DNA of 64,000 nt from IMG/VR virus record IMGVR_UViG_3300021964_009390, positions 124,001-188,000 of that record; one strand, given 5' to 3'. The notes below the pieces were generated by a model, which saw only the letters and a list, made by a program, of their open reading frames with translations, searched no databases and was not told the DNA's origin. Positions within the stretch are counted from its first letter, which is position 1; every line of letters starts with the position of its first letter. Shown piece after piece: positions 707 through 41,555 of this stretch. The translations under genes and the position numbers were made by a program.

Positions 707-1471
707 TCATTGCGGATTGTCTGGATTATTATTCAGGTTTTTCCAATCAGTCAAACTACCTCCAGTGATATCATCTAGTGACGAAACATTGACGTAGTTT
801 GTTTGGATGTCAAAAATCGTACCGGTGCCTGTCGATCTAGGTTTAGTAAACAACCAGCCTTTTATCGTGAATCCTGTGTTAGCCGATACTCGGTATGCGG
901 AGCTGGCTTGCAAATCTTTCGGGTAATCCATGTTAATGGTACCATTCCACAGCACTTCCGACCGGATTTCTTGTATTGGTGCATCTGGGTCTAGAAATGG
1001 GTCAACACTTTTACTACCTTGCGGTATTTTCCATGATAATATTATGTACGGGTTCGCATAAGGTGCAAAATTAGTAATTATCTGGTCTAAATCAGACTGA
1101 TATTTTGTCATAATGTCCATCGTAACCTCTATATTCACTGGGTTCACCGGAGGTAATTTATCGAATGCATTACTAGCTTCTCGGTGACTGTATCTTTGGG
1201 GGTATGAGAAACCTTCAATTTTGTTAAAAACTCTACCCGGGTCACGCGCGATACTATTCATGGACACGGCGATCACCGGTAATTGAATATGCTGACTCTT
1301 GTTTATAAGGTCGTGTACAACGCGTTGCTTATGCGCGTAAACATATCTCGGTTCAAAAGATTTTGTAGGTTTTCTATCTTTATTGTATCTCTTTACAATT
1401 GTCTCATCAAAAGCTGATAAAAATTGTGTTATTAAATCTTTTACCTCAAAGTTAAATGTATGATATCTCAC
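707..1471 (-). CDS. gp15: tail sheath stabilizer / tail terminator (T4 gp15-like)
   Basis: YHTFNFEVKDLITQFLSAF...YAHKQR...LPVIAVSMNSIARDPGRVFNK...QIITNFAPY...FTIKGWLF pattern; likely start GTG 1471, 5 nt below TAAATA. Confidence 0.8.
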   Translation of the reverse strand: MRYHTFNFEVKDLITQFLSAFDETIVKRYNKDRKPTKSFEPRYVYAHKQRVVHDLINKSQHIQLPVIAVSMNSIARDPGRVFNKIEGFSYPQRYSHREASNAFDKLPPVNPVNIEVTMDIMTKYQSDLDQIITNFAPYANPYIILSWKIPQGSKSVDPFLDPDAPIQEIRSEVLWNGTINMDYPKDLQASSAYRVSANTGFTIKGWLFTKPRSTGTGTIFDIQTNYVNVSSLDDITGGSLTDWKNLNNNPDNPQ

Positions 1472-1482
1472 ATAATTATTTA

Positions 1483-3087
1483 TCAAACAAACCGTTGTAA
1501 GAACCAACCCGGTAGTTTCTCTTTACATTTAGGTAGTACCCTGGATATCATACCGTCTAGTATGTATGTAGTTGAATAATCATCCTTAGATCTTGTACAT
1601 CTACCACAAGACTGTACTAATATATTTAACATTTTATTCTCATACCAGTCTGGGTCGGCTTCTAAAATGGTCTTAACCCGTTTGTCGTTAAACGGTAGAT
1701 AGGGTAGTTTCACTACAATTTGAAATCTGGCTAGATCGTCTTTTAAATCTACACCATGAGTTAGTGATGGTGACATCAATATTGTTGGTTCGTCAGACTG
1801 TTTATGTATGTTGATTATATCTTCATTTGTAACCCCGGGCTCTCTGTATACGAGCCGGTCACATTGAAGCGTTTCATATATAAATTGTGTTATATGATGT
1901 GAATGTGTATGTATCACACCCTTCTCGTCGCCATGATGAGATACTATCTCATTGATATTATCTACTATTTTAGGTAAAAATTTATCTATTGTATTTCTAC
2001 TCAAAGGGTATTTGCTAGAAACATATATTGGGGATTTCGCCGGAGGGAACTCAGACGGTATTTCTATATATTTATAATCTGTGATACCTAATGACTTTGC
2101 GAAGTTTTTGTGGTCCACGATAGTGGCACTCATCAGTAAAATTTTCTCACCGTTATCAAACAGCTGATTAGTTAAAGTGTCTATATGTAAAGGTGTCAGT
2201 CGTACCGTGGTATTGTTTTTTTCTACTATATATTCACAATTGTAAAAGTTGTCTGTACATAGTCGTACCTTGGCTAATAGTCTGTTGATATATGTATATT
2301 TGGATTGAGTTTTACTAGTCCATTTTGATTTTTTTCTCAATTGCTGTTGCAAATACATACGATGGTCATGTAATAAATTGTTCACATCATCTAACCACGA
2401 GTATACCGCCAATGGTTCACTTGACTTGAGTATAGGTAAAGACACCCCGCACCTTTTCGACACGTCATAATCTATAACACATGTGTTATGAGATACAATA
2501 TCGTCTTCTAGTTCGCTAGCTTCATCACATATTAAATATTGCCTTTGCTTGACATGTCCCGGTAGTTGCATATACATTTTATAATTCGTAACACCGTACT
2601 GACTAGTCAACAGTTTGTTTCTATCGTTATGATATGGACATTTACCAGACTCTCGATGCTGTGACAATATATGTCTTGGTATCACAGCAGATTCTATCTC
2701 AACATCCATGCTCGGGTCAATAGTACTCGTGTAGTTGCTTTTACCTTTAAGTGTGTCACATTCGAACAGCGCCACATACTGGTCTTGTAAAGCTTTGGTT
2801 ATTGTCAATGAAATAGCACCATGTGCTTGATCATGCTCGGTATGTATATATTGACCTGTCTGGTCAACCATAAAAGCTCGGTAAGAATTGATGTCCTCGT
2901 ACTTATATTCATCAATCTCTCGTGAGCTCTTCGCGAGGGTACTAGCGAAAAAACTCTTTCCGGAACCGGTCGGAGCATTCAGTATCACCGTATCATTATT
3001 TTTAAATGCAGCCTCTATCTTGTTTAATGTCTTAGACTGCAATGGGGTAGGCTGGTACCCTACCGGAAAGAAATTTAATATAGACAC
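1483..3087 (-). CDS. DinG/Rad3-like SF2 helicase
   Basis: NAPTGSGKS Walker A, DEASELE, SAT, GVDLKDDLARFQIVVKLPY, QSCGRCTRSKDDYSTTYILDG. Confidence 0.85.
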   Translation of the reverse strand: MSILNFFPVGYQPTPLQSKTLNKIEAAFKNNDTVILNAPTGSGKSFFASTLAKSSREIDEYKYEDINSYRAFMVDQTGQYIHTEHDQAHGAISLTITKALQDQYVALFECDTLKGKSNYTSTIDPSMDVEIESAVIPRHILSQHRESGKCPYHNDRNKLLTSQYGVTNYKMYMQLPGHVKQRQYLICDEASELEDDIVSHNTCVIDYDVSKRCGVSLPILKSSEPLAVYSWLDDVNNLLHDHRMYLQQQLRKKSKWTSKTQSKYTYINRLLAKVRLCTDNFYNCEYIVEKNNTTVRLTPLHIDTLTNQLFDNGEKILLMSATIVDHKNFAKSLGITDYKYIEIPSEFPPAKSPIYVSSKYPLSRNTIDKFLPKIVDNINEIVSHHGDEKGVIHTHSHHITQFIYETLQCDRLVYREPGVTNEDIINIHKQSDEPTILMSPSLTHGVDLKDDLARFQIVVKLPYLPFNDKRVKTILEADPDWYENKMLNILVQSCGRCTRSKDDYSTTYILDGMISRVLPKCKEKLPGWFLQRFV

Positions 3088-3093
3088 ATTGGT

Positions 3094-3122
3094 ATTATAT
3101 TAATATTATACTATACTGTCAA
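3094..3122 (-). promoter_or_regulatory. consensus sigma70 promoter TTGACA-17-TATAAT, 6 nt upstream of GTG 3087
   Basis: Exact consensus hexamers with a 17-bp spacer on the minus strand. Confidence 0.85.
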
Positions 3123-3456
3123 CTTGTAATACAGAATTATATAGTCGATGAGGTTTTTTCACAGGTAAATCATCTATTAATAGCTGTGTATGTATATTTT
3201 CATTACATAATGTTTTTAGTCTATAATCAAATACAATTTGCCGATGATCTGTATCAAAATAGTAATCGTATGGGTATGGAACTTCATATAATTTAGGTAT
3301 GTCATGTTGGTTAGTCACTGTGAATCCTATATAATGGCCTCGCTGCGCAACTAATAACAATTTTCCTTGACGTAGCGTTTTACCATTACATACAAACCTC
3401 ACATCATGTTGTATAAGTTCCATGCATACTTGTTCTATTTTTTCACTCAATAGCAT
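3106..3456 (-). CDS. hypothetical protein
   Basis: 116-aa ORF tightly packed in the operon. Confidence 0.7.
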   Translation of the reverse strand: MLLSEKIEQVCMELIQHDVRFVCNGKTLRQGKLLLVAQRGHYIGFTVTNQHDIPKLYEVPYPYDYYFDTDHRQIVFDYRLKTLCNENIHTQLLIDDLPVKKPHRLYNSVLQVDSIV

Positions 3457-3457
3457 G

Positions 3458-3829
3458 TCAAGAGTTCATGAACTGAATTTTTTGAGATGTATCCATAGGT
3501 AATACATTTTCGTTAAAATATGTCCAAAACGTATCATCTCCCGGATACTGATTGAGTATAGTTGTGCTATCAGCTGGAATCATACGAAATGATTGCATCA
3601 TTATATCCCAGGCTAAACATAAATTTTTCGATCTAGGGTCGTACGGTAATTTGCTACCCCCAGGTAAATAATTTAGCACAGTTCGCCCATTCACACTATT
3701 CAGTACACTCTCGTCCAACGTACACAACATACGTCTAGTGATAGGGGCACCGGGTCTAGATCGGCGACGATTGAATCTAATGTCTACAACATTGTTGTTC
3801 AATATTGAATTTAATGTACCTTGGTTCAC
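3458..3829 (-). CDS. DUF2693/WYL-like SH3-fold protein
   Basis: VVDIRF.RR...TRRMLCTLD...AWDIMMQSFRMIP pattern typical of this T4-like phage family. Confidence 0.6.
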   Translation of the reverse strand: MNQGTLNSILNNNVVDIRFNRRRSRPGAPITRRMLCTLDESVLNSVNGRTVLNYLPGGSKLPYDPRSKNLCLAWDIMMQSFRMIPADSTTILNQYPGDDTFWTYFNENVLPMDTSQKIQFMNS

Positions 3830-4263
3830 TAGCCTTCATCTTCTTTTAATCTATGTAGCTTACCAAATATACGTTGAGCATTGATAAATTGACCTCGACC
3901 AATAGTTTCAAATTTGTTATCGTTTTTTATAACCAGATTACTCACCGGAATTCCCATGTTGTTGGGAAATGTTACATAATCACCTGGTTGAGTGGTTAAT
4001 GCACTTTTACCTTGCATCACCACCCGGCCGACTCTCCAGGCCTTAGGGTTCGCGTTCGCTGGGACTACAATTCCATTCCGGATGATTTCCTCTCCAGTTT
4101 CAAACCTATCTACAAACTCTATCAACACAATATCATCTTCTAAAGATTCTACCGCGTATCCAATTAATGTAGAATCTAGCGAATCTTCATGGGCTTTAGA
4201 TAAATCGATTAAACTCTCAGTAGGTTCAATCGCGTCAATGTTTGCTTTTTGTTGTGTACTCAT
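3829..4263 (-). CDS. GroES-like co-chaperonin (T4 gp31 analogue)
   Basis: DDIVLIE...NGIVVP...GRVVMQG......PGDYVTFP Cpn10 pattern. Confidence 0.7.
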   Translation of the reverse strand: MSTQQKANIDAIEPTESLIDLSKAHEDSLDSTLIGYAVESLEDDIVLIEFVDRFETGEEIIRNGIVVPANANPKAWRVGRVVMQGKSALTTQPGDYVTFPNNMGIPVSNLVIKNDNKFETIGRGQFINAQRIFGKLHRLKEDEG

Positions 4264-4636
4264 ATTTTGATAAATCTATGTTTGCTTGTTTTATATAAAC
4301 ATTTATCTCCCTTGTTGAAATTTCAAGTTTTTTTGCTAACTTGATAATAATGTCCATGTACTCGTCACGTGGTTTATGTTTTTTAATGTAATTAATGCGC
4401 TTGAACCGCTCACGTGGTATAATGTAATGCAATAATTTGTAATGGTCCTGTTTATTTTCAAAAACCTGAAACATTATATTCGCGGTGTTGTTTATTAAAT
4501 TGCATGTCTGTTTGTTCAACATGCTACACCATCTATTTACTAAAAACGGTTGGTAGTCGCTCTGCTGGTCCAGAGTCTTGAGTGATGGTTCTTTTTTAGT
4601 AAATAATATATTTGATAGGTAGTTAAATATGTTCAC
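4235..4636 (-). CDS. gp62: clamp loader small subunit (T4 gp62-like)
   Basis: IFNYLSNILFTKK...YQPFLVNRWCSM...HYKLLHYIIPR...YIKK. Confidence 0.65.
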   Translation of the reverse strand: MNIFNYLSNILFTKKEPSLKTLDQQSDYQPFLVNRWCSMLNKQTCNLINNTANIMFQVFENKQDHYKLLHYIIPRERFKRINYIKKHKPRDEYMDIIIKLAKKLEISTREINVYIKQANIDLSKYEYTTKSKH

Positions 4637-5229
4637 TTAACTATCGTCTTGGTCGTCGCAAGAAACATATCATCATTAATATGGTAAAACATGTCTATTA
4701 TCTCGCGCATGAATTGACCAACCTGCATGTTGTTCAAATTAGTAGAAAATGCATGGTCTGGAGCACGATCACCCGCGGTTATGTTTATTCCGGTATGACC
4801 TAGTGTCACCCCGGATTTTACATATGTTATACTCACACTACATTTACCTTTAGGCTGACTTACACCGTTCTGCTCATGATCTTGATGTACGATCAGATCA
4901 TCACCATCCACCTCAATAGGGGCATTGTTTAAAAAACGTGAGCTCAACACATTAGCAATTTGTGTATTTAACAACCGTTGATACGCTACAGCCCCAAACG
5001 GGTCAGACAAGCACGGTATCTCCCACAAAAAATTTATCGCATCATCACTATATATGAACTCATTTTTCAATATATCTTCTGTATCAATCATACCATCTGC
5101 CTCTACAATCATTGGAGACCGGAAGGCAATAATGTTACCTATAGGTAATGTTTTTTCTCTAAAAAATTTATACGCGAATCTATCATGCAGCAGCGCACCA
5201 TCATAACACTCAATATCATTAATTATCAT
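4633..5229 (-). CDS. DUF366 family protein (lipoate/biotin ligase-like fold)
   Basis: YDG..L...FAY...IIAFRSPM...D.ED...I.SDD..NF..E...AVAYQRL...DGDDL...K.SVSI...HTGINI. Confidence 0.7.
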   Translation of the reverse strand: MIINDIECYDGALLHDRFAYKFFREKTLPIGNIIAFRSPMIVEADGMIDTEDILKNEFIYSDDAINFLWEIPCLSDPFGAVAYQRLLNTQIANVLSSRFLNNAPIEVDGDDLIVHQDHEQNGVSQPKGKCSVSITYVKSGVTLGHTGINITAGDRAPDHAFSTNLNNMQVGQFMREIIDMFYHINDDMFLATTKTIVK

Positions 5230-5236
5230 ACGATAT

Positions 5237-5265
5237 ATTATAGTATATTAAATCGTAGTTTTCAA
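5237..5265 (-). promoter_or_regulatory. sigma70-type promoter TTGAAA-17-TATAAT, 7 nt upstream of ATG 5229
   Basis: Read directly from the sequence. Confidence 0.75.
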
Positions 5266-5271
5266 TTTATT

Positions 5272-6117
5272 TTATTGTGTATCAGTTATATACTTTATTA
5301 CCGGTTGTAAAGAAATCCCTACATGTTCATCGTGTACACCTATATCAAATTTATTAGATAATATATCTATCAATCTCTTCATATGGTGGTTACCAGGGAG
5401 GTTTGGGTTCTTTGATAGGAGTTGCTCGAGAGTGTCTATATCATCAACAGGATAACCGAACCCTGCGCAATTATTTTTTGTTTTACACACTATTTGATCA
5501 TAACTTCTCTCATGGTAATGAACGAGGCATATACTAGTCGTATCGTACGCTACTTCTGATTCATGTACACCGTGTACATGGTGGTTCCCATGGTCAGTTG
5601 TTTTAAATTTATTATATTTATAAAACGTTTTTGCAAATTGATTGTAGCTATTGTGATAACCTCTCGTGGCTTGTCTAGCCGCCCGGTCATAACCACCTGG
5701 TGTTGTTATGTATGACCCTATATAATCTGTTTTGTATATACCTGTATCATTTTTAACATTCAATTGATTTAAATACTCAACAGTCCTATCCGGATGTAGC
5801 GTCTGTGTATTGTAATCATAATAAGTTATAAACTCATCAATGTCTACTGGCCACGCGAATTGGTAATCTTTCCTACCCACATCTCTCAGTATATGATGCA
5901 TGTGAGCTCCCTTGGCTCTATAATCATCACGTGATGTTAAATATATACCATGACTATTTTTGTATTGCTCACACATTTCATATGTACCATCGTCGCTACG
6001 ATTATCTACAATATATATGTTGTTATAACCAAACATGTTACCATGATATATTATCCAGTCCTCAACAATATCAATTTCATTTTTGACCATGGTGGCCAAC
6101 TTTACCAAACTACTCAT
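5272..6117 (-). CDS. glycosyltransferase, GT-A/GT2-like
   Basis: MVKNE..IVEDWI.YH, VDN.SDDGT, DIDEF, HGNH, HYH.RS. Confidence 0.8.
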   Translation of the reverse strand: MSSLVKLATMVKNEIDIVEDWIIYHGNMFGYNNIYIVDNRSDDGTYEMCEQYKNSHGIYLTSRDDYRAKGAHMHHILRDVGRKDYQFAWPVDIDEFITYYDYNTQTLHPDRTVEYLNQLNVKNDTGIYKTDYIGSYITTPGGYDRAARQATRGYHNSYNQFAKTFYKYNKFKTTDHGNHHVHGVHESEVAYDTTSICLVHYHERSYDQIVCKTKNNCAGFGYPVDDIDTLEQLLSKNPNLPGNHHMKRLIDILSNKFDIGVHDEHVGISLQPVIKYITDTQ

Positions 6118-6925
6118 TTAACCATGGGGTGTTAATTTTTACGTCACAACTATCAACCGGTTTATACTCCCATTGATTAATGTTTATTAGTTCGTTGGCA
6201 CGACCTACTCCATCGAATTGCCCACCAGTTATCAAATCATTATTTTGGATCCGCTGTTCAATTAAATTCATGGGTATACCGTGGCCATTAATTATATCCT
6301 CACATCGCGCTCTTTTCCGGTCATACCCGGTGTCGTGATAATGCAGGTACACAATGTCGGTTTGATGCTGTTTATTGTTTGTACTGGTACCGTGATGGTA
6401 TCCTAGATCTACTGTTTTAAAAGTACCGTTCCGGAAAAACTTTTTACACATGCCCGAGTCTGTTAAGTCCCAGTTAAATTTGTTTATTTCATGCACCGGG
6501 TGATCGTAATTTTTTTTCTCCGGTACACTATTCAACCAACCTCTTGTCATGTATATTTCTCCGTCGTCTGGTAGTGTTGCTATATATTTTTTAATTGTAT
6601 CTGAACATGTTACAACTCGGTTGCCCATACCATCCCACATACATATAAATTCATCAGCATCTAACGGTATCGAAATACCTGGTTGTTTGTTGTATTGTGC
6701 TATTTTGTTAGTGATCACATCACCTTTTTCTATAAACACGTCATGGCTGTACACGTTTATACCATAATTTTCTTTATATTCTTGCAATATTTCAAGGGTA
6801 CCGTCTGTAGAATTGTTATCATACACATGTATAGCCCACCATGGTACTATAGACCCGTGATGGTTGAGCCAGTCACGTATTATATGACTTTCATTTTTAA
6901 TATATGCGAATATTCTATTATACAT
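6110..6925 (-). CDS. glycosyltransferase, GT-A/GT2-like (tandem paralogue)
   Basis: IKNE..IIRDWLNHH, YDNNSTDGT, DADEF, GYH, LHYH. Confidence 0.8.
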   Translation of the reverse strand: MYNRIFAYIKNESHIIRDWLNHHGSIVPWWAIHVYDNNSTDGTLEILQEYKENYGINVYSHDVFIEKGDVITNKIAQYNKQPGISIPLDADEFICMWDGMGNRVVTCSDTIKKYIATLPDDGEIYMTRGWLNSVPEKKNYDHPVHEINKFNWDLTDSGMCKKFFRNGTFKTVDLGYHHGTSTNNKQHQTDIVYLHYHDTGYDRKRARCEDIINGHGIPMNLIEQRIQNNDLITGGQFDGVGRANELININQWEYKPVDSCDVKINTPWLNE

Positions 6926-6931
6926 GTTATT

Positions 6932-7603
6932 TTAGTCGATTATTTTTATATGTTCACATGATTTTATATAGAGTTGATCCTTCGGTGGTAGTGAAGATAT
7001 ATCCACCCATGCAAGAGCAATAAACTTACTATCCGGGTATGTAACTTGCTTCAAATACTCAATGTACGCTAATACACCGGATGGGTATGTACCGTACATT
7101 GTATCTACAAGGCTGCTGTAGTATTGTTCATCTATTAAGTTGTATCTTCGAATATCATCTTGTGTCCATATTTTATGAATTATTTTTCTCTTAGTGTATA
7201 GATCATTTGGATATATAACTGTGTTATATGGTCCAATACCGTCGTGCAGCACTCCATCCGGATTTCTCACGTCTACACAATACTGAGCGCATTTGTTGTA
7301 TAGTTTTTGCTTTTTGTCACTCGTGATTACTTGATGTACATTTTCCATACGCTCTAGATGTGGTATGTTTTCAGCTGTTGGATTCACCATTACAATAGGT
7401 GTTTCAAATTGTAACTGACGTATATTAATATTGTTACCGATTTCCCGCTCATTCCACCTAGAAGTCAAAACGCTAGGTACCGGCTTGGTGTTAACTGTAG
7501 CGACTAAATCATCAAAACTAGTGACTGTTTTGGATTTGTTTACAAATTGGTATTCAACTCCATACACACCTGGCAATATCTCTATAGATTTACTCGCAGT
7601 CAT
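6932..7603 (-). CDS. hypothetical protein in glycosylation island
   Basis: ORF coupled to gmd; likely start MTASK at 7603. Confidence 0.6.
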
Positions 7604-8594
7604 TATTGACCATATCAGTAACAAGCTGATCGAAGGACGTTCTAGGTGACCAGTTTAATTGTTCTCTAGCTTTTGTTGAATCACCTAGTAATTCATCAAC
7701 TTCCGCCGGACGAAAATATTTTTCATCGATGTATATCATCCTTCTACCTGTAATGCTGTCATACCCTACCTCATCAACCCCGGAACCTTCCCACATTATA
7801 TTGAACCCCTTGATGGTAAATGCCTTTTCAATAAATTCTCGTACTGTATGATATTCATTAGTTGATAGGACATAGTCATCTGGTGATGGTTGCTGCAGCA
7901 TCAACCACATGCCTTCGACATAATCCTTAGCATGGCCCCAGTCACGCTTACTGTCAATGTTACCCATTACCAGTCTATCAGTTTCGCCTTTCAATATTTT
8001 ATTCAAACCTAAAGTTATTTTCCGTGTCACGAAAGTCTCACCTCTTCTAGGACTCTCATGATTGAACAGTATACCAGTACATGCGTACATACCGTACGAC
8101 TCTCTATAATTTTTCGTAATCCAGTAACCATATAGTTTAGCGCATCCATATGGGGAACGTGGGTAAAATGGTGTAGTTTCACGTTGTGGTACCTCCTGTA
8201 CTAGACCATACAGCTCACTTGTACTAGCTTGGTATATTTTCGTTTTATCAATCATGTTTAGTAACCGGACTGCTTCTAATATTCTTAACGTGCCCAGACC
8301 ATCAACGTCTCCTGTATATTCAGGTACATCAAAACTAACTTTTACATGACTCATAGCGCCTAAGTTGTATATTTCATCCGGTTGAGTTTGTTGCAAGATA
8401 TTTATAATGTTTGTTGAGTCAGTGAGATCACCGTAATGTAAATTTATTTTATCATATATATGATCTACTCTGTGTGTATTTATCAAAGAAGATCTCCGGA
8501 CTAAACCATGTACTTCATAACCTTTGTCTATCAACAACTCTGCTAAATATGAACCGTCTTGACCGGTGATTCCAGTTATTAACGCTTTTTTCAT
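7590..8594 (-). CDS. gmd: GDP-mannose 4,6-dehydratase
   Basis: [63 protein letters not shown]. Confidence 0.97.
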
Positions 8595-8599
8595 TACAC

Positions 8600-9523
8600 T
8601 TATAATCTTAGTTTTGGGTGATTATTGACAAAATATTCGACTGTTTTTTCTATACCAGTCTGTAGACTTGTAAATTTTGTTTCCGGTAACAAGTCCATTA
8701 ACTTGGTATTATTAGCAGTTTTTTTATACTGACCATCACTATAATTTTTGTTAAACACTAACGCATGTTCGTAATCAAATGAACGTGCTATATATGTTGC
8801 TGCCTGTGCAATAGTATGCTCTTCACATGGACTTATTATGATATTCTCTTGATGAATTACGGGAACCAGTTTCATGATTATATCCGCTAAATCGTCTGCA
8901 TGTATAAACTGCCGGAGAGGCTTTCCGGAGCCTCTCACCTCAAACGGTGAATTTGACTGTTTAGCGACGTAACACTTATGAATTAGTGCTGGTAACACAT
9001 GAGCATCTTCTAGATTATAATTGTCATTATCACCATATATATTCGTAGGTATTACACAGTTATAATTGGTACCATATTGTTCGTTATATGCGCGACATTG
9101 TACATCTAACATGCGTTTCGCATATGCATATGCATCATTAGACATATGAGGTTTACCATCATGTAGCATGTTTTCATCAATAGGGTATGTAGTATCGTCC
9201 GGGAATATACAAGTAGATAGTATACCGATAAATTTACCTACCCGGTGGTCATGACATGCTTTGACTATATTAAAATTTATTAGCATGTTGTCTTCGAACA
9301 TATCTACCTTGTAGTTCATGTTTTTGTACAAACCACCTACGTTTGCTGCTAAGTGTATAACGCAATCTGGTTGGGATGTTTTCACATGCTCAGTCAACTG
9401 GTTGAAATCTCTGAGATCACAATCTGTAGACGACATATACTCTATTTGATAATCATACGATATAGCGGTTTTTTTAATCGCATGACCTACGAGCCCAGTA
9501 CCGCCAGTTACTAATATTTTCAC
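8600..9523 (-). CDS. fcl: GDP-L-fucose synthase
   Basis: [54 protein letters not shown]; adjacent to gmd. Confidence 0.93.
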
Positions 9524-9524
9524 G

Positions 9525-10394
9525 TTAATATATATCTAACAAGCTACAACATTCAACGTGTCCGGGATGCGATGTATTATATGTTTGCGTCCTAGCGTTT
9601 TGCATGTGCATGTGCAACGTTTTAATATCAATACATGGATTAAAAATCGGGTGTTGGTAGTGTTTATAAATTTCGCTCAATTTACTATCACATAACAATT
9701 CACCAACATGTATCAATTGCAGCTCACTCGGTATAAGTACCGGGGTTTCAAACCACCATGTGTCTTGTGAATATTTATTTGGTCGTTCATGTTCATGAAA
9801 TATTGATATATCATCTTCCGACACAAACTCCCATCTTGTCAAAGCTAATAACTTGTTTGACAAGTTTATAGCTTTTAACTTATCAATATCATTTGTTAAC
9901 ACAATATCACCATTACTTACACACCACAAACTTTTATCTTTGCAATTGTTGCAATACTCAAATAACGATTGGAAACTAGGTCGCCCTATACATGGTAGTA
10001 CAGTTAGTTTATCATGGGACTCGATCAAATGTTCCGACGGCCCGGTCTGTACATCCCACATTACATGGATATGTTCAACATTAGGGTTTTGTAAGTTTAA
10101 CTGTAATGCTAGTTGATATTCATACATTCTACTAGAGTTAGTATCATGATACATACAGGTTAAGACGTTAACTTTAGAGCTGGTATTTAGTGAATGGTGA
10201 TTATTTAGTATATAATTATTTATTTTTTTATAATCTACATCTGTTAACATAACATGACGGCCTTCAAATCTACCGGTAGTTTGCCAATGACGTTTAGCTG
10301 CGGCTATATTGCTACCAAACGCATGTTGTAAGTCAGGGTATGAATTCAAATAATCTGTATAGTTTACTCTTGAAGGGTGTGGGTATTTTATCAT
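9525..10394 (-). CDS. putative glycosyltransferase with N-terminal YPDL...HW...G..EGR repeat
   Basis: YLNSYPDL..AF......KRHW..TGRFEGR followed by NGDIV, ALTRWE, SQDTW, NPC. Confidence 0.55.
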   Translation of the reverse strand: MIKYPHPSRVNYTDYLNSYPDLQHAFGSNIAAAKRHWQTTGRFEGRHVMLTDVDYKKINNYILNNHHSLNTSSKVNVLTCMYHDTNSSRMYEYQLALQLNLQNPNVEHIHVMWDVQTGPSEHLIESHDKLTVLPCIGRPSFQSLFEYCNNCKDKSLWCVSNGDIVLTNDIDKLKAINLSNKLLALTRWEFVSEDDISIFHEHERPNKYSQDTWWFETPVLIPSELQLIHVGELLCDSKLSEIYKHYQHPIFNPCIDIKTLHMHMQNARTQTYNTSHPGHVECCSLLDIY

Positions 10395-11305
10395 TTAACA
10401 ATTTTTTTTCCATAGTATCGAACTATGTCTCCACGTATATCTTTAGGTATCTTATATACACCTTCCGGAGGTGTTTGTGATTCGGGTGTGACATTAAATA
10501 TACTATATAAACCACTACCTATAGATATCTTATCAACATCTCCAACCACTCTATCGGCTAGTACTGGTGCATTACCACCACAAGCAAATATAACAACATC
10601 ATAATTTTTAACAACACTATTTATTTCCTCCGCTATACGAGATACAGTTTCCATGTGGTTTTTATCTGGTCCAGTGTTACCAAAACATGAGGGGTATTCT
10701 ATATACCCTAGATCCGATATATTATATAGGTTGTTATCTACATAGCTATCGTAACAGGCTTTACCCATGTTGCTTACAATTAATACTCGATTATTACTGA
10801 GAGCGCGTTTACATATTTTCTGTGATTCATCAAACCATGTGTTTATATCGTTTATTATAGGTTCAAAAATCTTAAAGTCTTGTTTTACCATTGGAATAAT
10901 ACCTTTTGACCAATTCCAATTACCTAGATGTGTTGATATATAGCATTTACTATATTCATCGCTGAATTTATCCATATGTTCCTGTAAACCTATACCTTGA
11001 TGTAGTAATAATAAAGAAAAGGTTGAGTTTGCTAGTGCAGTCTTGTAGCTATCCACCCATTGATCTAACACCGGTGAATCAATAATTTTTTCTAGACCAA
11101 TTTCACTCTCTCGGTGGATATCTATTGTACTGTCGTAGAGACCAGCAGTATTGTACAACCACCGGCAAGACCATTTCATATCCTTCCACGGTGAATACAT
11201 ATGCTTTATACTATCAATTTCACCTATAGTCTTTAAATGATGTACATACAATAAGCAGCCTTCGCTACACCCTGCTCTGTAATAACTGTAGTTACTATTG
11301 CGCAT
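10391..11305 (-). CDS. hypothetical glycan-related protein
   Basis: 304 aa; YDVVIFACGG.A..L...ISIGSGL resembles GT-associated domains; TAAATA 6 nt upstream. Confidence 0.5.
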   Translation of the reverse strand: MRNSNYSYYRAGCSEGCLLYVHHLKTIGEIDSIKHMYSPWKDMKWSCRWLYNTAGLYDSTIDIHRESEIGLEKIIDSPVLDQWVDSYKTALANSTFSLLLLHQGIGLQEHMDKFSDEYSKCYISTHLGNWNWSKGIIPMVKQDFKIFEPIINDINTWFDESQKICKRALSNNRVLIVSNMGKACYDSYVDNNLYNISDLGYIEYPSCFGNTGPDKNHMETVSRIAEEINSVVKNYDVVIFACGGNAPVLADRVVGDVDKISIGSGLYSIFNVTPESQTPPEGVYKIPKDIRGDIVRYYGKKIVK

Positions 11306-11335
11306 TATTTCTATTTACTCTAATAGTTAATTTAA

Positions 11336-12256
11336 TCAATCATAACCGATATTATTTCTATATGTAAACTTATCTAGGCTATATTTTAGCGGTTCGAACT
11401 CTGTACCGTGTTCATTATAACTAGTATAATACTCATTAATGATTTTATAGTTATCGGTTATACCGTTCATACATGGTTTGTAACAATTAATGTCAAATTT
11501 AAGTTGATCACGTACTGACTTATACATTATACCTCTCTGTTCTCCGGGGATGTGAGTGTATATATTTTCCGGATAAGAAGTTTTTTCCATACCACAATTA
11601 GATATTTTTACCAATTCACGGTCAACAATATTATTCAATATATAATTGTATATATAATTTGTAGGGTGGTTCACCGAGTAAAATAGTAGCTTATCCACCC
11701 AGTTGTCCCGGATATAATTTGATACATCAATAAAATTTGCATCCGGGTATGTTTCTTTTGCAACCTGTTCTTTATTACTAATTAACTGTATTGTAGTGCT
11801 GATATGGTTTGATAATTCAGCGTTGTCTATATAATCACTATTATCAAACACTTCGTCATAAAACATGTTTACCGGTTTTTTGGACAGATAATATTTTATT
11901 AAATTTAAGTAATGGTAATCGCATGGATTCGTCACTAGGCCACCTAGGTTATTTTTTACATACACTAAATCCGGGAAATATACACCACCAAAAATAGATG
12001 GTATCATTAGTAAAACTGAATCTTTTTTCCGATGTTTACATATATAATCTGTACCTAAATAATTTTTACCTCTGTAATCACTTTTTATTGGTTGAGTTAT
12101 TATTATGTCTGCATCTTTAATAGTGTTCAAAAAGCTTTTTTGAGATATATTAGTTGCATAACATAAAATATTTTCAACTTTGCATTGTGTAAACAACCCG
12201 GAGTGTATTAATTTACTAACTTGGCAATTACCGTATAATAAAACTTTCATGCTCAT
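11336..12256 (-). CDS. WcbI-family polysaccharide biosynthesis protein (putative acetyltransferase)
   Basis: YGNCQ, ADIIITQP, YFPD, LFYSVNHPTN motifs. Confidence 0.75.
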   Translation of the reverse strand: MSMKVLLYGNCQVSKLIHSGLFTQCKVENILCYATNISQKSFLNTIKDADIIITQPIKSDYRGKNYLGTDYICKHRKKDSVLLMIPSIFGGVYFPDLVYVKNNLGGLVTNPCDYHYLNLIKYYLSKKPVNMFYDEVFDNSDYIDNAELSNHISTTIQLISNKEQVAKETYPDANFIDVSNYIRDNWVDKLLFYSVNHPTNYIYNYILNNIVDRELVKISNCGMEKTSYPENIYTHIPGEQRGIMYKSVRDQLKFDINCYKPCMNGITDNYKIINEYYTSYNEHGTEFEPLKYSLDKFTYRNNIGYD

Positions 12257-14868
12257 CTGTTAAATTTATATTGCTTTATTAGAGCTTGTTTCTTACCATT
12301 GTCTGTTTTAGTTCTACCATACGAGTTATCAACTATTCTATAGTATGATAACGGACCTTCCCAAGACTTCGCGATGTTTAAATTTGAATCTATACATCTT
12401 AACCACAAAGCCCAGTCTGCAATACTACCATATTTTTTCTCATCGAAGTAACCGACAATTTCATGTATCTCTCGGCGCCACACCGGGGCAGAGTGGCATG
12501 GGTTACACGTATTATTACTATTGCAGTTCCAGAAGTTTTCAATATGCAAAGGTTGACCTACACTATACTCATTAAACCACATATCGTTGTGTTTTTTCAC
12601 GTGTTCATTATATTTTTTTACGTAACTTTTACCAGCTACAACTGGAGCAAAAGCTATATCTGTTGCCGGTGAATTGGACAGGAAATCTATCATATACCGG
12701 GAAAAATCCGGGTCATGACGATCATCTAGATTGGCATTTGTTATATATAATCCGGTAGATTTTTTAATTCCTAATTCCCAACACTTATAAATACCTGGGT
12801 CTTCCTTTTTAGTGATGTTTATTATCCTTATATTATGGTGATTTTTTTCCAGGTCTGCGATCTTTTTTTGTGTTTTTTTACTATGTGAATCTTTTACACT
12901 CACAATTACCCATTCTAGCTCATCTGGATATTTTGAATTTTGGTTTTTAAAATCCTCACACAGATCATCAAAGTATTCATCTGCTTTATACAACGATGTC
13001 ACCCATGACAACATCACTGATTCAGATTTTTTTTCTAGTTTTTTTAAATCATATAATATTTTCTGGTTGAATGTCTGTTGAGATACGTGGGACTTATCTA
13101 AATTATGTAAATATTTATTAGTCCTTTCAACAAGACTAGTGAACTGATCGCTAGTCAGACTTTCAATATCTTTTACATTATCATAAAACATAGGGTAATC
13201 AATACCTATATACTGTTCGAAGCTCGGATGTCTATTCAACAGTACAGGTGTCTCGCATCTAATGCACTCTAACAACAGATTGCTAGCCGTAACATCGAAT
13301 GCATCCATATACAATATATTCTTTTCAAAAATTTTTATATACTCATCATTTGCTAGGTGTTTGATAAGCTCAACATTATACATGGATGATTTGATGATAT
13401 CTGTAAGGTTGCTGAAGTCTTTTTTGACTAGTAATCGTTTATGTATATTACCCGGTATTTTAATATCGTTAAAAGATTTTAAATTTCGCATCCACCAACC
13501 TATATGATATATTTGTTTATTTTTAGACTGTTTATACTGCTTGATGTCGAATCTAGTTTTTATGTCATCAGTTATAGGGTGATTAACTGAGACGATTTTA
13601 TTTTTAAGGAAAGGAAATTTTTTCAATATATCCGGTCGTGTCAAGTACTTTTTATGATTTCTAGAGACAGTATATATGTACTCAGCTTTTTGCATAAGCC
13701 GGAAATCACAATTTTTATAATATGTATCGTTACTGATTAACTCTGGTAGTGCATGCTGGACTAACAAACCATTAAAATTCCCCGGGGTTGTTTTAACCTG
13801 GTTGCTTAGTTCATCTATACTTTTGGGGGTTGAGCGCTTATATATAGTTTCCCATTGCTCGAAAGGTGGGTTGTGTACAAATGTTATTAATTTTATATCA
13901 TTATCTATAATAGAGTCCATCACCCATCTATTAGTTACCATGTCTCTACCCCATGTAGTAAGTTCTTCTAACCAAGGGTTAAAATATAGTGTATTTTTGT
14001 ACGTAAGTTTATCATATCCTCGATCGATTAACTCCTCATGCAAATGATGCATAGTTCCTTTCCAGCCAAAATAATGGGTACCATACCAAGAGCCTCCATG
14101 TGGTGATAGAATGATATTTTCACCAGTTATTTCCCAATTTTTTTGTATACTTTTTCCTGTATTTATACACACTCTACCCTCATGACGACCATATTTTATA
14201 TAATGTGCATACGCTAGCTGTGGTGTATCAAACCCAGCTGCTGTTACATCTGGATTGTTATACATGTAATATTCTGCATCAAAGCTATTTTTTAGTGTAT
14301 ATTTAATTAAATTCTCACCGGATTCATGTGCATGTACAAGTAGTCGATCATCCGATATATGATGAGATATACCGTTTAATAACCGATATGTTTTACTATC
14401 AAACTCCGGGTTAAGGTTGTAAAAATGCTCTCTAGACATTAATCGGTTTTCCTTCTCACCATACTTATAGTAATGTTGTGCAGCTTTACTAGGTGTATTG
14501 AAACCACCAGATACTATGTCTGGATAAGCGCGTATATAAAAATCTCGATCCAAATTGCCACCCACTAAATCTAAAGCGGATTTTTCTTCATGTGATTTAA
14601 TTAGAAATTGGTCACAAATGATACATTTTTTATACTCACAGTTCAGTAGTGTGTTGATTTGTTGTATTATCGTGTCGTCAATATTACCTGTAACTAGATT
14701 GGTACTATTGTATATTTTATAACTCGGAACTCCGGTAGATGATCTATCGTCATCGCTTGTAAATATTATACAGTCATTGTTGTTCTTTACATACTCAGTA
14801 ACATTAGTTGGAAGATTCTCTATAGAACTGACTCTAAATATTGTTACACCGTTACCATTCTTGGACAT
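12253..14868 (-). CDS. multidomain glycosyltransferase (repeats + GT-B-like + GT2)
   Basis: Two YPD/HY..YG..E.R repeats, middle HNPP..GWWMRN..LECI...P domain, C-terminal ANLDDR/PVWR/ADWALW GT2. Confidence 0.75.
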   Translation of the reverse strand: MSKNGNGVTIFRVSSIENLPTNVTEYVKNNNDCIIFTSDDDRSSTGVPSYKIYNSTNLVTGNIDDTIIQQINTLLNCEYKKCIICDQFLIKSHEEKSALDLVGGNLDRDFYIRAYPDIVSGGFNTPSKAAQHYYKYGEKENRLMSREHFYNLNPEFDSKTYRLLNGISHHISDDRLLVHAHESGENLIKYTLKNSFDAEYYMYNNPDVTAAGFDTPQLAYAHYIKYGRHEGRVCINTGKSIQKNWEITGENIILSPHGGSWYGTHYFGWKGTMHHLHEELIDRGYDKLTYKNTLYFNPWLEELTTWGRDMVTNRWVMDSIIDNDIKLITFVHNPPFEQWETIYKRSTPKSIDELSNQVKTTPGNFNGLLVQHALPELISNDTYYKNCDFRLMQKAEYIYTVSRNHKKYLTRPDILKKFPFLKNKIVSVNHPITDDIKTRFDIKQYKQSKNKQIYHIGWWMRNLKSFNDIKIPGNIHKRLLVKKDFSNLTDIIKSSMYNVELIKHLANDEYIKIFEKNILYMDAFDVTASNLLLECIRCETPVLLNRHPSFEQYIGIDYPMFYDNVKDIESLTSDQFTSLVERTNKYLHNLDKSHVSQQTFNQKILYDLKKLEKKSESVMLSWVTSLYKADEYFDDLCEDFKNQNSKYPDELEWVIVSVKDSHSKKTQKKIADLEKNHHNIRIINITKKEDPGIYKCWELGIKKSTGLYITNANLDDRHDPDFSRYMIDFLSNSPATDIAFAPVVAGKSYVKKYNEHVKKHNDMWFNEYSVGQPLHIENFWNCNSNNTCNPCHSAPVWRREIHEIVGYFDEKKYGSIADWALWLRCIDSNLNIAKSWEGPLSYYRIVDNSYGRTKTDNGKKQALIKQYKFNR

Positions 14869-14896
14869 CTGAATTATTTATTTATGTAGTTGAATA

Positions 14897-15832
14897 TTAC
14901 AACACCCAAAACACACGTTCCCAAGCATGAGACATAGTACCATCAAGCGCAATAGGTTCTGGTTCAAACAATGTTTCAATATCTATATTTTTTAGAAAAT
15001 TAAACAGTCTGTCGCAATACCTATTTGTACACCAGAACATAGTACCGGCATTATACTTAATTCTCATGTTACTAGGTATAGTTAAACCCATCATTTTTGA
15101 TAAATTGTTCATTGAGATATAATTGACACTCCGAGGATTATATTTCTCTATGATACTAAATTTATCTACGGGAAATATGTCATTTTTAGTGTTATTCAGT
15201 ATGTTAGCGTTAAAGCTGTAACTATCTAACAAACTTTTACAGTATTCCTCACGCCACTTTTCATGTAGATATGTTGTTTTTTTACCATGTATCTTACATA
15301 CATGTTTATATTTTATAAATTTTTTGTCTTTCACAAATTGCAAAAAGCTTCTGATATCACGACCATTATTCGGTACAAATTCATGATGCACACCTGTAGA
15401 TGATTCCATATGTTCTTGAATCTGACTCTCGATATCATCACTAGCGGATTTGTCACAAATGTAAAAATATACATCCGCATTCACTTGTTGTCGGTATCGA
15501 TTGATATACGAGCAAATTTCTCTGAGGTACATTGTGTAGTATATATATACAACAATCGCGACATCTGCCTGCACTACAGGAGCATCGCTACGGATTTCAT
15601 CTGTTTTGATATTGATAGGGTATGCACATTGTTGATGCAACGCCAAGAATCTATCTGGTGTTATAAACTCTGGATTACAAAATTGTGATATAAATTTCTT
15701 TTGTGACGTGGTAAGTTTATTATGTTCGACAATATGTACATTTTGTATATTGTGTTTAGATAAACTGTTATATAAATCTACGCAAAATTGTTCATAACTA
15801 TCAACGTAACGTATATAGTTTAACTGTATCAT
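14897..15832 (-). CDS. rhamnan synthesis protein F (RgpF)-like
   Basis: YIYY, NNGRDI, KIHGKK, AGTMFW, DGTMSHAWER. Confidence 0.8.
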   Translation of the reverse strand: MIQLNYIRYVDSYEQFCVDLYNSLSKHNIQNVHIVEHNKLTTSQKKFISQFCNPEFITPDRFLALHQQCAYPINIKTDEIRSDAPVVQADVAIVVYIYYTMYLREICSYINRYRQQVNADVYFYICDKSASDDIESQIQEHMESSTGVHHEFVPNNGRDIRSFLQFVKDKKFIKYKHVCKIHGKKTTYLHEKWREEYCKSLLDSYSFNANILNNTKNDIFPVDKFSIIEKYNPRSVNYISMNNLSKMMGLTIPSNMRIKYNAGTMFWCTNRYCDRLFNFLKNIDIETLFEPEPIALDGTMSHAWERVFWVL

Positions 15833-16617
15833 GCGTTGAGTATGAGTTGTTGTGTGATCCCGGGTAGTGAATCAAACCATGGTTTAAGTTTATAGGTATA
15901 ATCGTATCTCAGGCGGTATTTGGCTTGCTTTGTTTTGGTACGTGTTTGACTTTCCAGATGTATGGCAACTGCCGTATCTAGATACCAATTTTTATACCCG
16001 GTGATAACATATCGCATGTTTAATTGAATATCTTCCCAGCATTCAGTATATGATTCATCAAAACCACCACATTTTGTAAATTTATCACGATCTATCAACA
16101 AACATGCAGCGGTACAACCTACCACGATATCGTTAGAGAGTTGGTTTGTGTTCCCATAACCACGGTGTGTGCATTGTAGCAACCCGGTGGTGTCCACATA
16201 CACATGCTGCCCACCATGCTGTATTTTACCGTCCGGGAAAATTAGTCTACAACCAACAGTAGATATATTGTTGTCTGACACAATTTTTTTGTACATTTGA
16301 TCTACACAATTATTCTGTAAAATTATATCATCGTTACACAACAACACATACGGTTCGTCAATACAGTTGTTGATAACGTAGTTGTTATTACCAGCGAAGT
16401 GGTATTGTTCGAATTCTAAAAATTTGCAGTTTTTAGGTGTTAGCATGTGCTTTAGTGTAGCAATTAGTTGCAGTTTGTGGTCTTGATCGCTTCCGGTGTC
16501 ACATATATAAAATTTAATCTGTACGTCATGAGTGTGTTCCAATACACTAGACACACACTGAGAGACCAGGTCAGGATTGTTCTTGGTTAGAATAACTATT
16601 GCAACTTCTGCTGTCAT
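15829..16617 (-). CDS. GT2 family glycosyltransferase
   Basis: DTGS, FAGNNN, LCNDD, IQHGG, TAACLLI, GGFDE...EDI. Confidence 0.88.
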   Translation of the reverse strand: MTAEVAIVILTKNNPDLVSQCVSSVLEHTHDVQIKFYICDTGSDQDHKLQLIATLKHMLTPKNCKFLEFEQYHFAGNNNYVINNCIDEPYVLLCNDDIILQNNCVDQMYKKIVSDNNISTVGCRLIFPDGKIQHGGQHVYVDTTGLLQCTHRGYGNTNQLSNDIVVGCTAACLLIDRDKFTKCGGFDESYTECWEDIQLNMRYVITGYKNWYLDTAVAIHLESQTRTKTKQAKYRLRYDYTYKLKPWFDSLPGITQQLILNA

Positions 16618-16634: not shown

Positions 16635-17354
16635 ATGGCAAATAGAAAATCACGACCTCGACCTAACGATATTGGTTCGCTCACATGGGACCTAGATTTT
16701 AAAATTAATTATAATTTCACACCCAACGTTACACACAAAAGTTTTGTGGGTATGATGTTGAAGTCTGATACAAAAATGCTGCTAGTAGACGGACCAGCGG
16801 GTACAGCCAAAACATATCTGGCTACATATGGTGCGTTGTGTTTGTTAAAAAAACATGCGATTGACGAGATCGTGTATATACGCAGCGTGGTAGAAAGTGC
16901 CAGTCAAAAAATGGGTAGCCTTCCAGGAGAAGTCGATGACAAGTTTTTACCATACAGTATGCCTTTGGTAGAAAAATTAGATGAACTGGCCGGGGTCACG
17001 GTACGTAAAGAGTTGATAGGTAGAAATTTTGCACATTGTGTTCCTGTCAACTACGTTCGAGGTCTCACGTTCAACAACAGCTTTGTGATTGTTGACGAGG
17101 CACAAAATCTGACAACCGGGGAACTCACCACCATCTTGACTAGATTTGGTGAAGGTAGTAGATTTGTGATTGTAGGAGATACTAAACAGAGTGACATCAA
17201 CTCCCGGTCTGGTTTTGCTCCTGTCAAAAATTGTTTCGATAATCAAGAGAGTGAGGACCGAGGTATATACACATTCAATTTCAGTGAAGAGGATATCGTG
17301 CGAAGCGACATTTTGAAATTTATAGTCAAACAATTGGACAACATACAAAAATGA
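16635..17354 (+). CDS. phoH: PhoH-like ATPase
   Basis: GPAGTAKT, GSLPG, RGLTF, DEAQN, TRFGE, GD..QSD, DIVRS. Confidence 0.93.
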   Translation: MANRKSRPRPNDIGSLTWDLDFKINYNFTPNVTHKSFVGMMLKSDTKMLLVDGPAGTAKTYLATYGALCLLKKHAIDEIVYIRSVVESASQKMGSLPGEVDDKFLPYSMPLVEKLDELAGVTVRKELIGRNFAHCVPVNYVRGLTFNNSFVIVDEAQNLTTGELTTILTRFGEGSRFVIVGDTKQSDINSRSGFAPVKNCFDNQESEDRGIYTFNFSEEDIVRSDILKFIVKQLDNIQK

Positions 17355-18265
17355 AAATTGTACATATACTAGCCACTCCGTGCGCCGGAGCTCCTAGTAC
17401 ATTGTCAAAATATTTAAACAAACTTCCTGGAGTGACTAGTGAGGTACTCACAACCGAGACGACTGATTTGAATGAATGTCGGAGAAAATTACATACAGAT
17501 CAGAATATACAATACAGATTGAATCGAGCGGATGTGTTACATTGGCATAACATGTATATTGAAAACGATTTACATGCCAAGCAATTGGTCACATTCCACA
17601 GTCCACCAGAAAACAGGATGGTACATGACAGTATCAACATGTTAACTAACAACAACAAAGTCAAGAAAACTGTAGTCAGTCACTACCATACATTGTTAGA
17701 TGCGTATTCTGGTTACACTGGTGTGAGAAACATTGTTGATGTTGATGATAGTTATGTTACACCATGCAATCCCAAGCAGCATGTCTTGTTCGGTATGACA
17801 CCCACACCTGAACAGCCTGGTACAATATGGCAAACAAAAGGTTTCGATAAAACTTTGCTCATGATGAAGCGATTGAAAATGAGAAACAGTCGAGTACACT
17901 TTCGTACATTGACCGATGCAACACGTAGTGATTGTTTAGAGTTCAAATCTAATTGTGATTTGGTGATAGATGAATGCGTCACACCAGGGTTTCATTTGTC
18001 CGGACTAGAGGGATTGGCATTAGGTAAACCTACTGTGTGCTGGATTGACGATCGAGTTTGTGACATGTTAAAACGTTTGACTGGTGCTGAGGATGTACCC
18101 TTTATCAGTGACAGCGTATATTGGTTAGAAGACACGCTATACAGGTTACTGGAGCGTGGAGATGATCATTTGCGTGAGGTAGGGTCAAAGAGCCGGGAAT
18201 GGTTTTGCAAATACTGGAAGACATCAGACATATTGAATCAATATGTGCAGTTATATAATGAATGA
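17351..18265 (+). CDS. GT-B/GT4-like glycosyltransferase
   Basis: DVLHWH, TKG, CDLVIDEC..GFHLSGLEGLALGKP. Confidence 0.7.
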   Translation: MKIVHILATPCAGAPSTLSKYLNKLPGVTSEVLTTETTDLNECRRKLHTDQNIQYRLNRADVLHWHNMYIENDLHAKQLVTFHSPPENRMVHDSINMLTNNNKVKKTVVSHYHTLLDAYSGYTGVRNIVDVDDSYVTPCNPKQHVLFGMTPTPEQPGTIWQTKGFDKTLLMMKRLKMRNSRVHFRTLTDATRSDCLEFKSNCDLVIDECVTPGFHLSGLEGLALGKPTVCWIDDRVCDMLKRLTGAEDVPFISDSVYWLEDTLYRLLERGDDHLREVGSKSREWFCKYWKTSDILNQYVQLYNE

Positions 18266-19982: not shown

Positions 19983-19990
19983 ATAATAAC

Positions 19991-41269: not shown

Positions 41270-41294
41270 CAGATGTGGTAATATAAATAGTAAC

Positions 41295-41513
41295 ATGCCA
41301 ACAACTAAAAAAGCAAAAACTACAAAAACTTCAGCCCCAGACTACAAAATCGTACTTGAAGAAGTGTTAGATCTGAGCTCAGCTCTAGTTAGAGAGATTG
41401 ACAACATTATGGAGTCACAATTACCACCGGCTCAAGTTGGTAAAGTTTTAGGTGATGTGGTTTCCGGATTTCAACAGAGACTAGAAGAATATAAAGTATC
41501 CGCGAAACTATAA
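41295..41513 (+). CDS. small hypothetical late protein
   Basis: ATG 41295 lies 5 nt below TATAAATA. Confidence 0.65.
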   Translation: MPTTKKAKTTKTSAPDYKIVLEEVLDLSSALVREIDNIMESQLPPAQVGKVLGDVVSGFQQRLEEYKVSAKL

Positions 41514-41520
41514 ATTTATA

Positions 41521-41549: not shown

Positions 41550-41555
41550 TAGAGT

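Follow-up and report, generated by a model that had tools for sequence, protein, structure and literature searches.

How does a tailed phage come to carry a GDP-L-fucose synthase that resembles those of giant viruses and eukaryotes? The question is raised by a stretch of 64,000 nucleotides (hereafter the window), bases 124001-188000 of the 222,461-bp IMG/VR virus record IMGVR_UViG_3300021964_009390, which is rated 100% complete. An earlier note, made from the letters alone, described positions 7590-9523 of the window as a GDP-fucose synthase of the eukaryotic or giant-virus type. This range holds two genes: fcl, encoding the GDP-L-fucose synthase itself, and gmd, encoding a GDP-mannose 4,6-dehydratase (Table 1). 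Based on protein comparisons, trees and gene neighbourhoods, we find that Fcl, Gmd and an 871-aa glycosyltransferase of the same gene island probably represent lineages common to a marine phage clade and to Imitervirales-like giant viruses (and eukaryotes), the module having been exchanged between realms.

The fcl product is of the eukaryotic and giant-virus type

Fcl is a GDP-4-keto-6-deoxymannose 3,5-epimerase/4-reductase and belongs to the extended short-chain dehydrogenases/reductases (SDR). The window protein matches the Pfam Epimerase family at 3.7e-48, and its top 18 PDB matches are GDP-fucose synthases without exception (18/18). Scored over the full length of each protein with HMMER, it reaches 283 bits against human TSTA3 and 274 bits against the enzyme of Naegleria fowleri, compared to 157 bits against E. 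coli Fcl. With full-length scores of this order, the gap between human and E. coli far exceeds chance. Residues 2-306 align with residues 9-320 of human TSTA3 (E 2.6e-83). Both motifs on which the earlier note relied are present in the protein (residues 102-146, and SDGQYKKTA) and align with their human TSTA3 counterparts, the second of which reads SDGQFKKTA.

Catalysis in this family uses a Ser-Tyr-Lys triad, with a Cys and a His as acid and base for the two epimerisations. In the HMMER alignment, S103, C105, Y132, K136 and H175 of the window protein fall on S114, C116, Y143, K147 and H186 of human TSTA3; we take the E. coli equivalents to be S107/Y136/K140, C109 and H179. The Rossmann motif GxxGxxG is found as GGTGLVG at residues 7-13 (GGSGLVG in the human protein). 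Since this motif and all five residues aligned to the human catalytic set are present, the enzyme looks active.

Against the NCBIfam equivalog model NF047922 the protein scores 217 bits, under the cut-off of 500. This model is narrow, for among the 10 control genomes that it matched only 3 passed the 500-bit cut-off, and the shortfall would reflect a lineage effect and not a loss of function. For annotation this is a warning that bacterial equivalog models miss Fcl proteins of this kind.

Fcl groups with phage and giant-virus proteins, apart from bacteria

In a 206-row LG+G4 tree, the Fcl proteins of E. coli, Paenibacillus, Deinococcus, 10 Pseudomonadota and the cyanophages P-SSM2 and S-SRM01 form one clade (SH-like approximate likelihood ratio test, SH-aLRT, 100; branch 0.54). 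The patristic distance from the window Fcl is 0.92-0.93 to giant viruses, 1.37 to a eukaryote-like anchor and 2.1-2.2 to E. coli and P-SSM2. The anchor, P0144, reaches 398 bits with human TSTA3, and the Atlas cluster nearest to it is 92% Eukaryota, mostly Chordata. The giant-virus Fcl protein P0048 scores 315 bits against the human and 139 bits against the E. coli enzyme.

Trees under the posterior mean site frequency (PMSF) model give a finer picture. A quick PMSF tree places the window inside a 97-supported clade together with P0144 and two clades, B and D, of nucleocytoplasmic large DNA viruses (NCLDV, the giant viruses). In a careful PMSF tree of 78 rows, 28 phage rows including the window form one clade (82/78, recovered in 86% of bootstrap trees). 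This phage clade and a further phage protein, P0114 (66/59), join giant-virus clade B at 81/85, and clade D groups with the anchor P0144 (97/97). The phylogenies that the earlier note had proposed as a check thus do not nest Fcl in bacterial clades; they group it with contigs that carry NCLDV capsid, TopoII, poly(A) polymerase, Rpb2 or MutS genes, and the assignment to a eukaryotic or giant-virus type is borne out.

Among the representatives of clusters at 50% identity, five (P0142, P0150, P0151, P0216 and P0226) have the Fcl domain fused to others in proteins of 553-1310 aa. Giant-virus clade D includes one of them, P0142 (569 aa, with the Fcl domain at residues 261-568).

The close relatives of Fcl in the samples searched are viral

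A word search with Fcl returned 7,563 matches, the best of them 60-72% identical. The closest relatives, 60-73% identical, are found on phage or phage-like contigs. One of them (P0007, 69% identical) lies in the corresponding island of a T4-like contig, and five more (P0022, P0034, P0054, P0046 and L003) stand in co-directional, phage-like contexts, some with PhoH. The contig of P0114 carries a phage virion protein (phrog_1645, 8e-90).

Outside the phages the nearest are Fcl proteins of giant viruses, which infect algae and protists; these are 52-60% identical to that of the window. Hallmark genes were sought within 8-10 kb of fcl in these relatives. P0048, P0067 and P0123 adjoin TopoII, and the first two also lie by an NCLDV capsid gene and a poly(A) polymerase gene. 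The contig of P0076 carries IF4E and an RNA polymerase subunit, contig L022 carries Rpb2 and MutS, and bin L008 carries ubiquitin E1. Out of 21 IMG/VR loci recovered by a pattern scan, 12 are named giant-virus bins.

On three contigs of giant-virus clade B (L051, L148 and L149), fcl directly follows TopoII in every case, and on two of them the genes for the major capsid protein and for poly(A) polymerase are a few genes away; in this clade fcl is a stable gene of the core region.

Relatives of comparable closeness were not found in the known phages, plasmids and bacteria searched. Known phage Fcl proteins are at most 40% identical to that of the window, those of cyanophages 33-36%. In 301 evenly drawn Pseudomonadota, 146 have an Fcl and none exceeds 40% identity; in 72,556 plasmids, which hold 318 Fcl genes (including those of Bacillota, Deinococcota and Fusobacteriota), none exceeds 36%. 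The six 8-mers that recover the 21 viral loci detected nothing closely related among the genomes of 185,579 prokaryotic species, at a sensitivity of about 27% per sequence.

Two phage-like contigs with Fcl proteins 59-61% identical to that of the window (L141 and L150) carry, beside PhoH-Gmd-Fcl, genes for a GT7 beta-1,4-galactosyltransferase, a GT29 sialyltransferase with a CMP-sugar synthetase, and a GT92 glycosyltransferase. They further encode DUF3431/DUF3405 proteins, several Sulfotransfer_2 proteins and a caspase-like Peptidase_C14, all typically eukaryotic families.

Gmd and the large glycosyltransferase share the affinity

The product of gmd matches Pfam GDP_Man_Dehyd at 9e-148 (492 bits) and scores 547.7 bits against TIGR01472, above the equivalog cut-off of 415. 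In a Gmd tree of 112 rows, the sister clade of the window protein and its phage relatives (SH-aLRT 96) mixes Gmd proteins of giant viruses with phage-like ones; the Gmd proteins of cyanophages (98) and Pseudomonadota (94) diverge further out. We rejected identity alone as a diagnostic for Gmd, because the PDB scores are nearly equal (478 bits against the human and 472 bits against the E. coli enzyme, not discriminating alone) and the ranges of identity to the different groups overlap. Two IMG/VR records of chlorovirus size (L117, 327,147 bp; L118, 330,611 bp) encode Gmd proteins that are 52-53% identical to that of the window and lie far off in this tree.

The 871-aa glycosyltransferase is related to the protein encoded immediately behind fcl in giant-virus bin L008 (29% identity over 618 aa, E 1e-69). 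Beyond four phage relatives, all of its 11 matches in the IMG/VR scan are giant-virus bins or large viral contigs, and it has no match in 101 Pseudomonadota. The tandem glycosyltransferases of the GT2 type, finally, have relatives at 27-31% identity in 11 giant-virus bins and also match (3e-24) in one of the 101 Pseudomonadota. The earlier suggestion that these neighbours look NCLDV-like therefore stands for Gmd, through its tree, and for the 871-aa protein, through its giant-virus relatives and the adjacency in L008; the tandem GT2 genes allow no verdict either way.

Two proteins of giant-virus contigs are interrupted. The Gmd of bin L008 (5536-7917, minus strand, 793 aa) has its domain split in two stretches by a large insert, and so has the Rpb2 of contig L022 (2306-7735, minus strand, 1809 aa). 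These inserts are possibly inteins.

The carrier is a T4-like phage and the island is sound

Judged by its gene content, the carrier is a divergent T4-like marine myovirus. The record encodes a gp23-type major capsid protein (296.8 bits), T4-gp15_tss, a large terminase (TerL), SbcC, helicases and a gp43-type family-B polymerase (phrog_262, 656 bits). These T4-like hallmark genes argue against the carrier being a giant virus; the NCLDV major capsid family PF04451 has no match in the 222-kb record, yet it has none in the controls either. A cyanophage was considered and rejected, as psbA is absent from the 222-kb record and the polymerase shares only about 31% identity with those of cyanomyoviruses. 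The sequencing runs that hold the sequence are estuary and marine metagenomes.

Elsewhere in the phage genome (58633-59775, plus strand, and nearby) are genes for a DUF1501 protein (387 bits) and for proteins with PSCyt2/PSD1 domains. We take these families to be typical of Planctomycetota and Verrucomicrobiota, and they are a possible hint to the host. DUF1501 also matched the Caulobacter control.

The island consists of 11 co-directional genes, about seven of them glycosyltransferase-like, which cover about 11 kb of the minus strand (5272-16617). It is bordered by gp15, a helicase and DUF366 on one side and by PhoH on the other. The order gp15/helicase, island, PhoH is common to contigs of other samples (L024-L026) and to IMG/VR contigs, with genes 50-81% identical; in L024 and L026 the flank from gp15 to DUF366 keeps its order at 60-80% identity. 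A 30-kb Logan contig (in X1) covers 4000-9999 of the window with zero differences. Pieces from three runs of other samples and studies (X3-X5) tile the stretch with zero differences and an even depth of 2-5x, spanning the junctions of DUF366 with the adjacent glycosyltransferase gene, of P0003 with gmd and of gmd with fcl. In GC content, fcl (0.36) and gmd (0.38) resemble the core genes (0.36-0.40), and the central transferase genes are slightly lower (0.30-0.35). Misassembly, which the earlier note had named as something to check, was rejected because independent phage contigs keep the layout and other samples tile the region without differences.

A probable exchange between virus realms and its alternatives

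We consider exchange between the phages and the giant viruses to be the probable origin of the module, as the earlier note had proposed. The module would have been swapped across virus realms directly or via a short chain of intermediates, and it would afterwards have spread and diversified among marine phages. The exchange appears to be old, since giant-virus proteins are only 52-60% identical to Fcl and the GC content of the genes is near that of phage core genes. It is also a matter of the whole marine phage clade and not of this phage alone. In an approximately unbiased (AU) test of the direction of transfer, forcing the NCLDV rows and the anchor together with the phages outside cost 0.2 log-likelihood units (p-AU 0.497), so that no donor can be named and nested and sister positions are not separated.

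The AU result is one of several points that weigh against exchange. The backbone supports are moderate (81/85 and 82/78) and the bootstrap fell short of full convergence. P0144 is the sole eukaryote-like anchor that was placed, and its position shifted between trees. For Gmd, the differences in identity to the window are small (giant viruses 66-70%, cyanophages 67-68%, Pseudomonadota up to 67%). Several of the contigs called phage-like were classed by gene order and PhoH rather than by structural genes. The sensitivity of the 8-mers derives from 37 of 136 known clade members detected, and the bacterial whole genomes sampled one by one are all Pseudomonadota. The 14 listed runs with the sequence are all DNA or of unrecorded library type. 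Transfer by way of a cell is also conceivable.

Phage metabolic genes are usually host-derived, and fcl and gmd could have come from a bacterial host with a eukaryote-like Fcl, with the giant viruses acquiring theirs independently from similar cells. The DUF1501 and PSCyt2/PSD1 genes could point to Planctomycetota or Verrucomicrobiota, phyla outside our sampling; in the Atlas, a cluster close to the window Fcl has a label of 40% Bacteria, and many representatives at 36-47% identity are without known origin. Against such a host stand the searches of Pseudomonadota, plasmids and prokaryotic species genomes given above, which gave no close relative within their scope, and all 13 of the contigs checked whose Fcl is at least 56% identical to that of the window are viral. 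We regard a host origin as quite unlikely. Separate captures of a eukaryotic TSTA3-type gene, by phages from environmental or grazer DNA and by giant viruses on their own, are unlikely as well. In the tree, the partner of the phage clade is NCLDV clade B and not the eukaryote-like anchor, which is also the more distant in patristic terms, and Gmd and the 871-aa protein also tie the phage to NCLDV, with fcl next to the transferase gene in L008. We know of no access of phages to mRNA-derived, intron-free genes of eukaryotes, and the genes of giant viruses are intron-poor. Such captures would nevertheless agree with the animal-like anchor inside a 97-supported group with clade D, with an AU test that permits the phage clade outside all NCLDV, and with the other eukaryote-type families (GT7, GT29, GT92, Sulfotransfer_2) held by phage relatives.

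Two further explanations carry less weight. If two old Fcl types predated the viral acquisitions, the likeness of phage and NCLDV proteins could be a matter of retention and a slow rate. The non-E. coli type is old and diverse, with at least 150 clusters at 50% clustering; the grouping of phages with NCLDV recurs, however, for Gmd and the 871-aa protein, and to our knowledge tailed phages and giant viruses have no common ancestor able to pass on the gene vertically. This ancient paralogy is very improbable. A chimeric assembly or a binning error that fused giant-virus DNA to a phage is a negligible prospect: the record is indeed a metagenome assembly, and the genes in the middle of the island are slightly lower in GC content than the flanks, but the gene order recurs in contigs of other samples, the contigs from X1 and X3-X5 agree without differences, and fcl and gmd are near the core genes in GC content.

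A possible role in glycan synthesis

Gmd and Fcl would convert host GDP-mannose to GDP-4-keto-6-deoxymannose and then to GDP-L-fucose, that is, by the de novo pathway. GDP-L-fucose would then feed phage-encoded transferases, among them a GT10 fucosyltransferase elsewhere in the genome (70 bits; 40345-40743 of the record, minus strand), which lies by two sulfotransferase genes (41178-42396, minus strand). The GT10 protein is likely to consume the GDP-fucose made by the enzymes of the window. The glycan that these transferases may assemble would contain fucose, would probably be sulfated, and would sit either on the virion or on the infected cell.

Sulfation is suggested by the rest of the genome. 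Outside the window, between 33698 and 112560 of the record, 10 matches over the cut-off (loci L164-L171) were found to Sulfotransfer_2 (PF03567, carbohydrate sulfotransferases), a family with no match in any of the 14 control prokaryotes. The same genome also holds two Sulfotransfer_1 genes, NeuB and cytidylyltransferases. A broader reading, which we offer tentatively and hold to be doubtful, is that a clade of large marine phages has built a eukaryote-style glycan toolkit through recurrent gene exchange, either with giant viruses or with the hosts of these. This toolkit would comprise GDP-fucose synthesis, GT10, about 10 carbohydrate sulfotransferases and sialic-acid genes, to which relatives add GT7, GT29 and GT92. 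If so, virions or infected cells would be covered in alga-like glycans that bear sulfate and fucose, a glycan disguise common to two virus realms.

Comparison with known systems

The window Fcl shares with human TSTA3/FX (PDB 4e5y, 4bkp) and with the Naegleria enzyme (6aqy) a full-length match, the catalytic positions and the motifs LSTCIFPD and DGQ(F/Y)KKTA. Unlike these, it is encoded by a phage, and it is nearer to giant-virus proteins (52-60% identity) than to the animal-like anchor (patristic distance 0.92 compared to 1.37). With E. coli Fcl/WcaG (PDB 1bsv, 1e6u) it has the SDR fold family and the reaction in common; the two differ in sequence (157 bits, 33-35% identity).

Among viruses, the GMD/GMER pair A118R/A295L of PBCV-1 is the nearest in kind: the viral genome supplies the two enzymes that lead from GDP-mannose to GDP-fucose, beside glycosyltransferases of its own, and in chloroviruses the fucose ends on capsid glycans (PMC9614988). 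The relatives of the window genes differ from this pair in being marine Imitervirales-like contigs (with major capsid protein, TopoII, MutS and poly(A) polymerase genes), and the carrier here is a tailed phage. The "lipopolysaccharide" genes of cyanomyoviruses (PSSM2_257/258 of P-SSM2, and those of S-SRM01 and S-SCSM1) offer a similar setting, in which gmd and fcl of a T4-like marine phage adjoin each other near glycosyltransferase genes. Their Fcl, unlike that of the window, belongs to the bacterial clade, at 33-36% identity.

Genes for GDP-fucose were already known in cyanophages, in the bacterial type, and in giant viruses, for capsid glycans. Our literature search found no paper that describes giant-virus-type Fcl in phages. 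What is new is an fcl of the giant-virus and eukaryote type that is stably seated in T4-like phages together with gmd and a large transferase. It is a tangible example, with several genes, of gene flow linking Caudoviricetes and Nucleocytoviricota, viruses of different host domains in the same water, and it draws attention to little-described marine phages that are unusually rich in glycan and sulfation machinery. Taxonomic binning by best hit could take such phage islands for giant-virus DNA.

Other features of the island and its flanks

The features of the island and of its phage flanks are listed in Table 1.

Table 1. Genes of the sugar island and its flanks, in window coordinates
Feature	Position	Strand	Evidence
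Phage flank: gp15 tail-sheath stabiliser (707-1507), helicase (1483-3087), small conserved open reading frames, DUF366 (4633-5229)	707..5229	-	Pfam T4-gp15_tss, DUF366; PHROG helicase
Two tandem GT2-type glycosyltransferases	5272-6117 and 6110-6925	-	Pfam Glyco_tranf_2_4, 9e-14 and 6e-12
P0003, 230 aa, no assigned function, downstream of gmd	6932..7624	-	No significant Pfam match
gmd (P0001), GDP-mannose 4,6-dehydratase, 334 aa, directly downstream of fcl	7590..8594	-	Pfam, TIGR01472, tree
fcl (P0002), GDP-L-fucose synthase, 307 aa, GTG start, eukaryote/giant-virus type	8600..9523	-	Translation, Pfam, PDB scores, trees
P0004, 289 aa, conserved, no assigned function, directly upstream of fcl	9525..10394	-	Synteny
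GT-D-like protein, 304 aa	10391..11305	-	Pfam GT-D-like, 5e-06, slightly under cut-off
WcbI-family polysaccharide biosynthesis enzyme, 306 aa	11336..12256	-	Pfam WcbI, 1.5e-23
871-aa glycosyltransferase, GT2 domain at residues 621-754	12253..14868	-	Pfam GT2, 1e-08
RgpF-family (rhamnan synthesis F-like) glycosyltransferase, 311 aa	14897..15832	-	Pfam RgpF, 2e-22
GT2 glycosyltransferase, 262 aa, first gene of the island	15829..16617	-	Pfam Glycos_transf_2, 2e-10
PhoH-like ATPase, phage flank	16599..17354	+	Pfam PhoH, 4e-48; position kept in related phage contig L024

The two genes that enclose the fcl-gmd pair differ in conservation. P0003 is 36% identical to sequences of related phages, over about 90-100 aa only. 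P0004 has counterparts in related phage contigs that are 61-63% identical and keep their position; it has no Pfam match even at E <= 1, the IMG/VR pattern scan for it was empty, and its AlphaFold2 model (from 3 sequences) is unusable, with a predicted local distance difference test (pLDDT) score of 41. The GT-D-like protein is 50-59% identical to its counterparts in related phages.

Past PhoH, the plus strand from 17351 to 21049 holds open reading frames of 304, 579 and 352 aa, which lack relatives in all of the loci compared and do not match any Pfam family significantly. The 579-aa frame has a weak PHROG match to a glycosyltransferase.

On the minus strand, a perfect sigma-70 consensus promoter (12/12) is found at 3094-3122, immediately upstream of the helicase gene, and a near-perfect one (11/12) at 5237-5265, immediately upstream of DUF366. 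Between 3000 and 18000, the counts of promoter-like and terminator-like sequences are at the level of chance (87 compared to 79.5, and 10 compared to 7.4). For the T4 late-promoter word TATAAATA, the window shows a mild excess (18 copies compared to 9.45), and the copies in the island lie inside genes.

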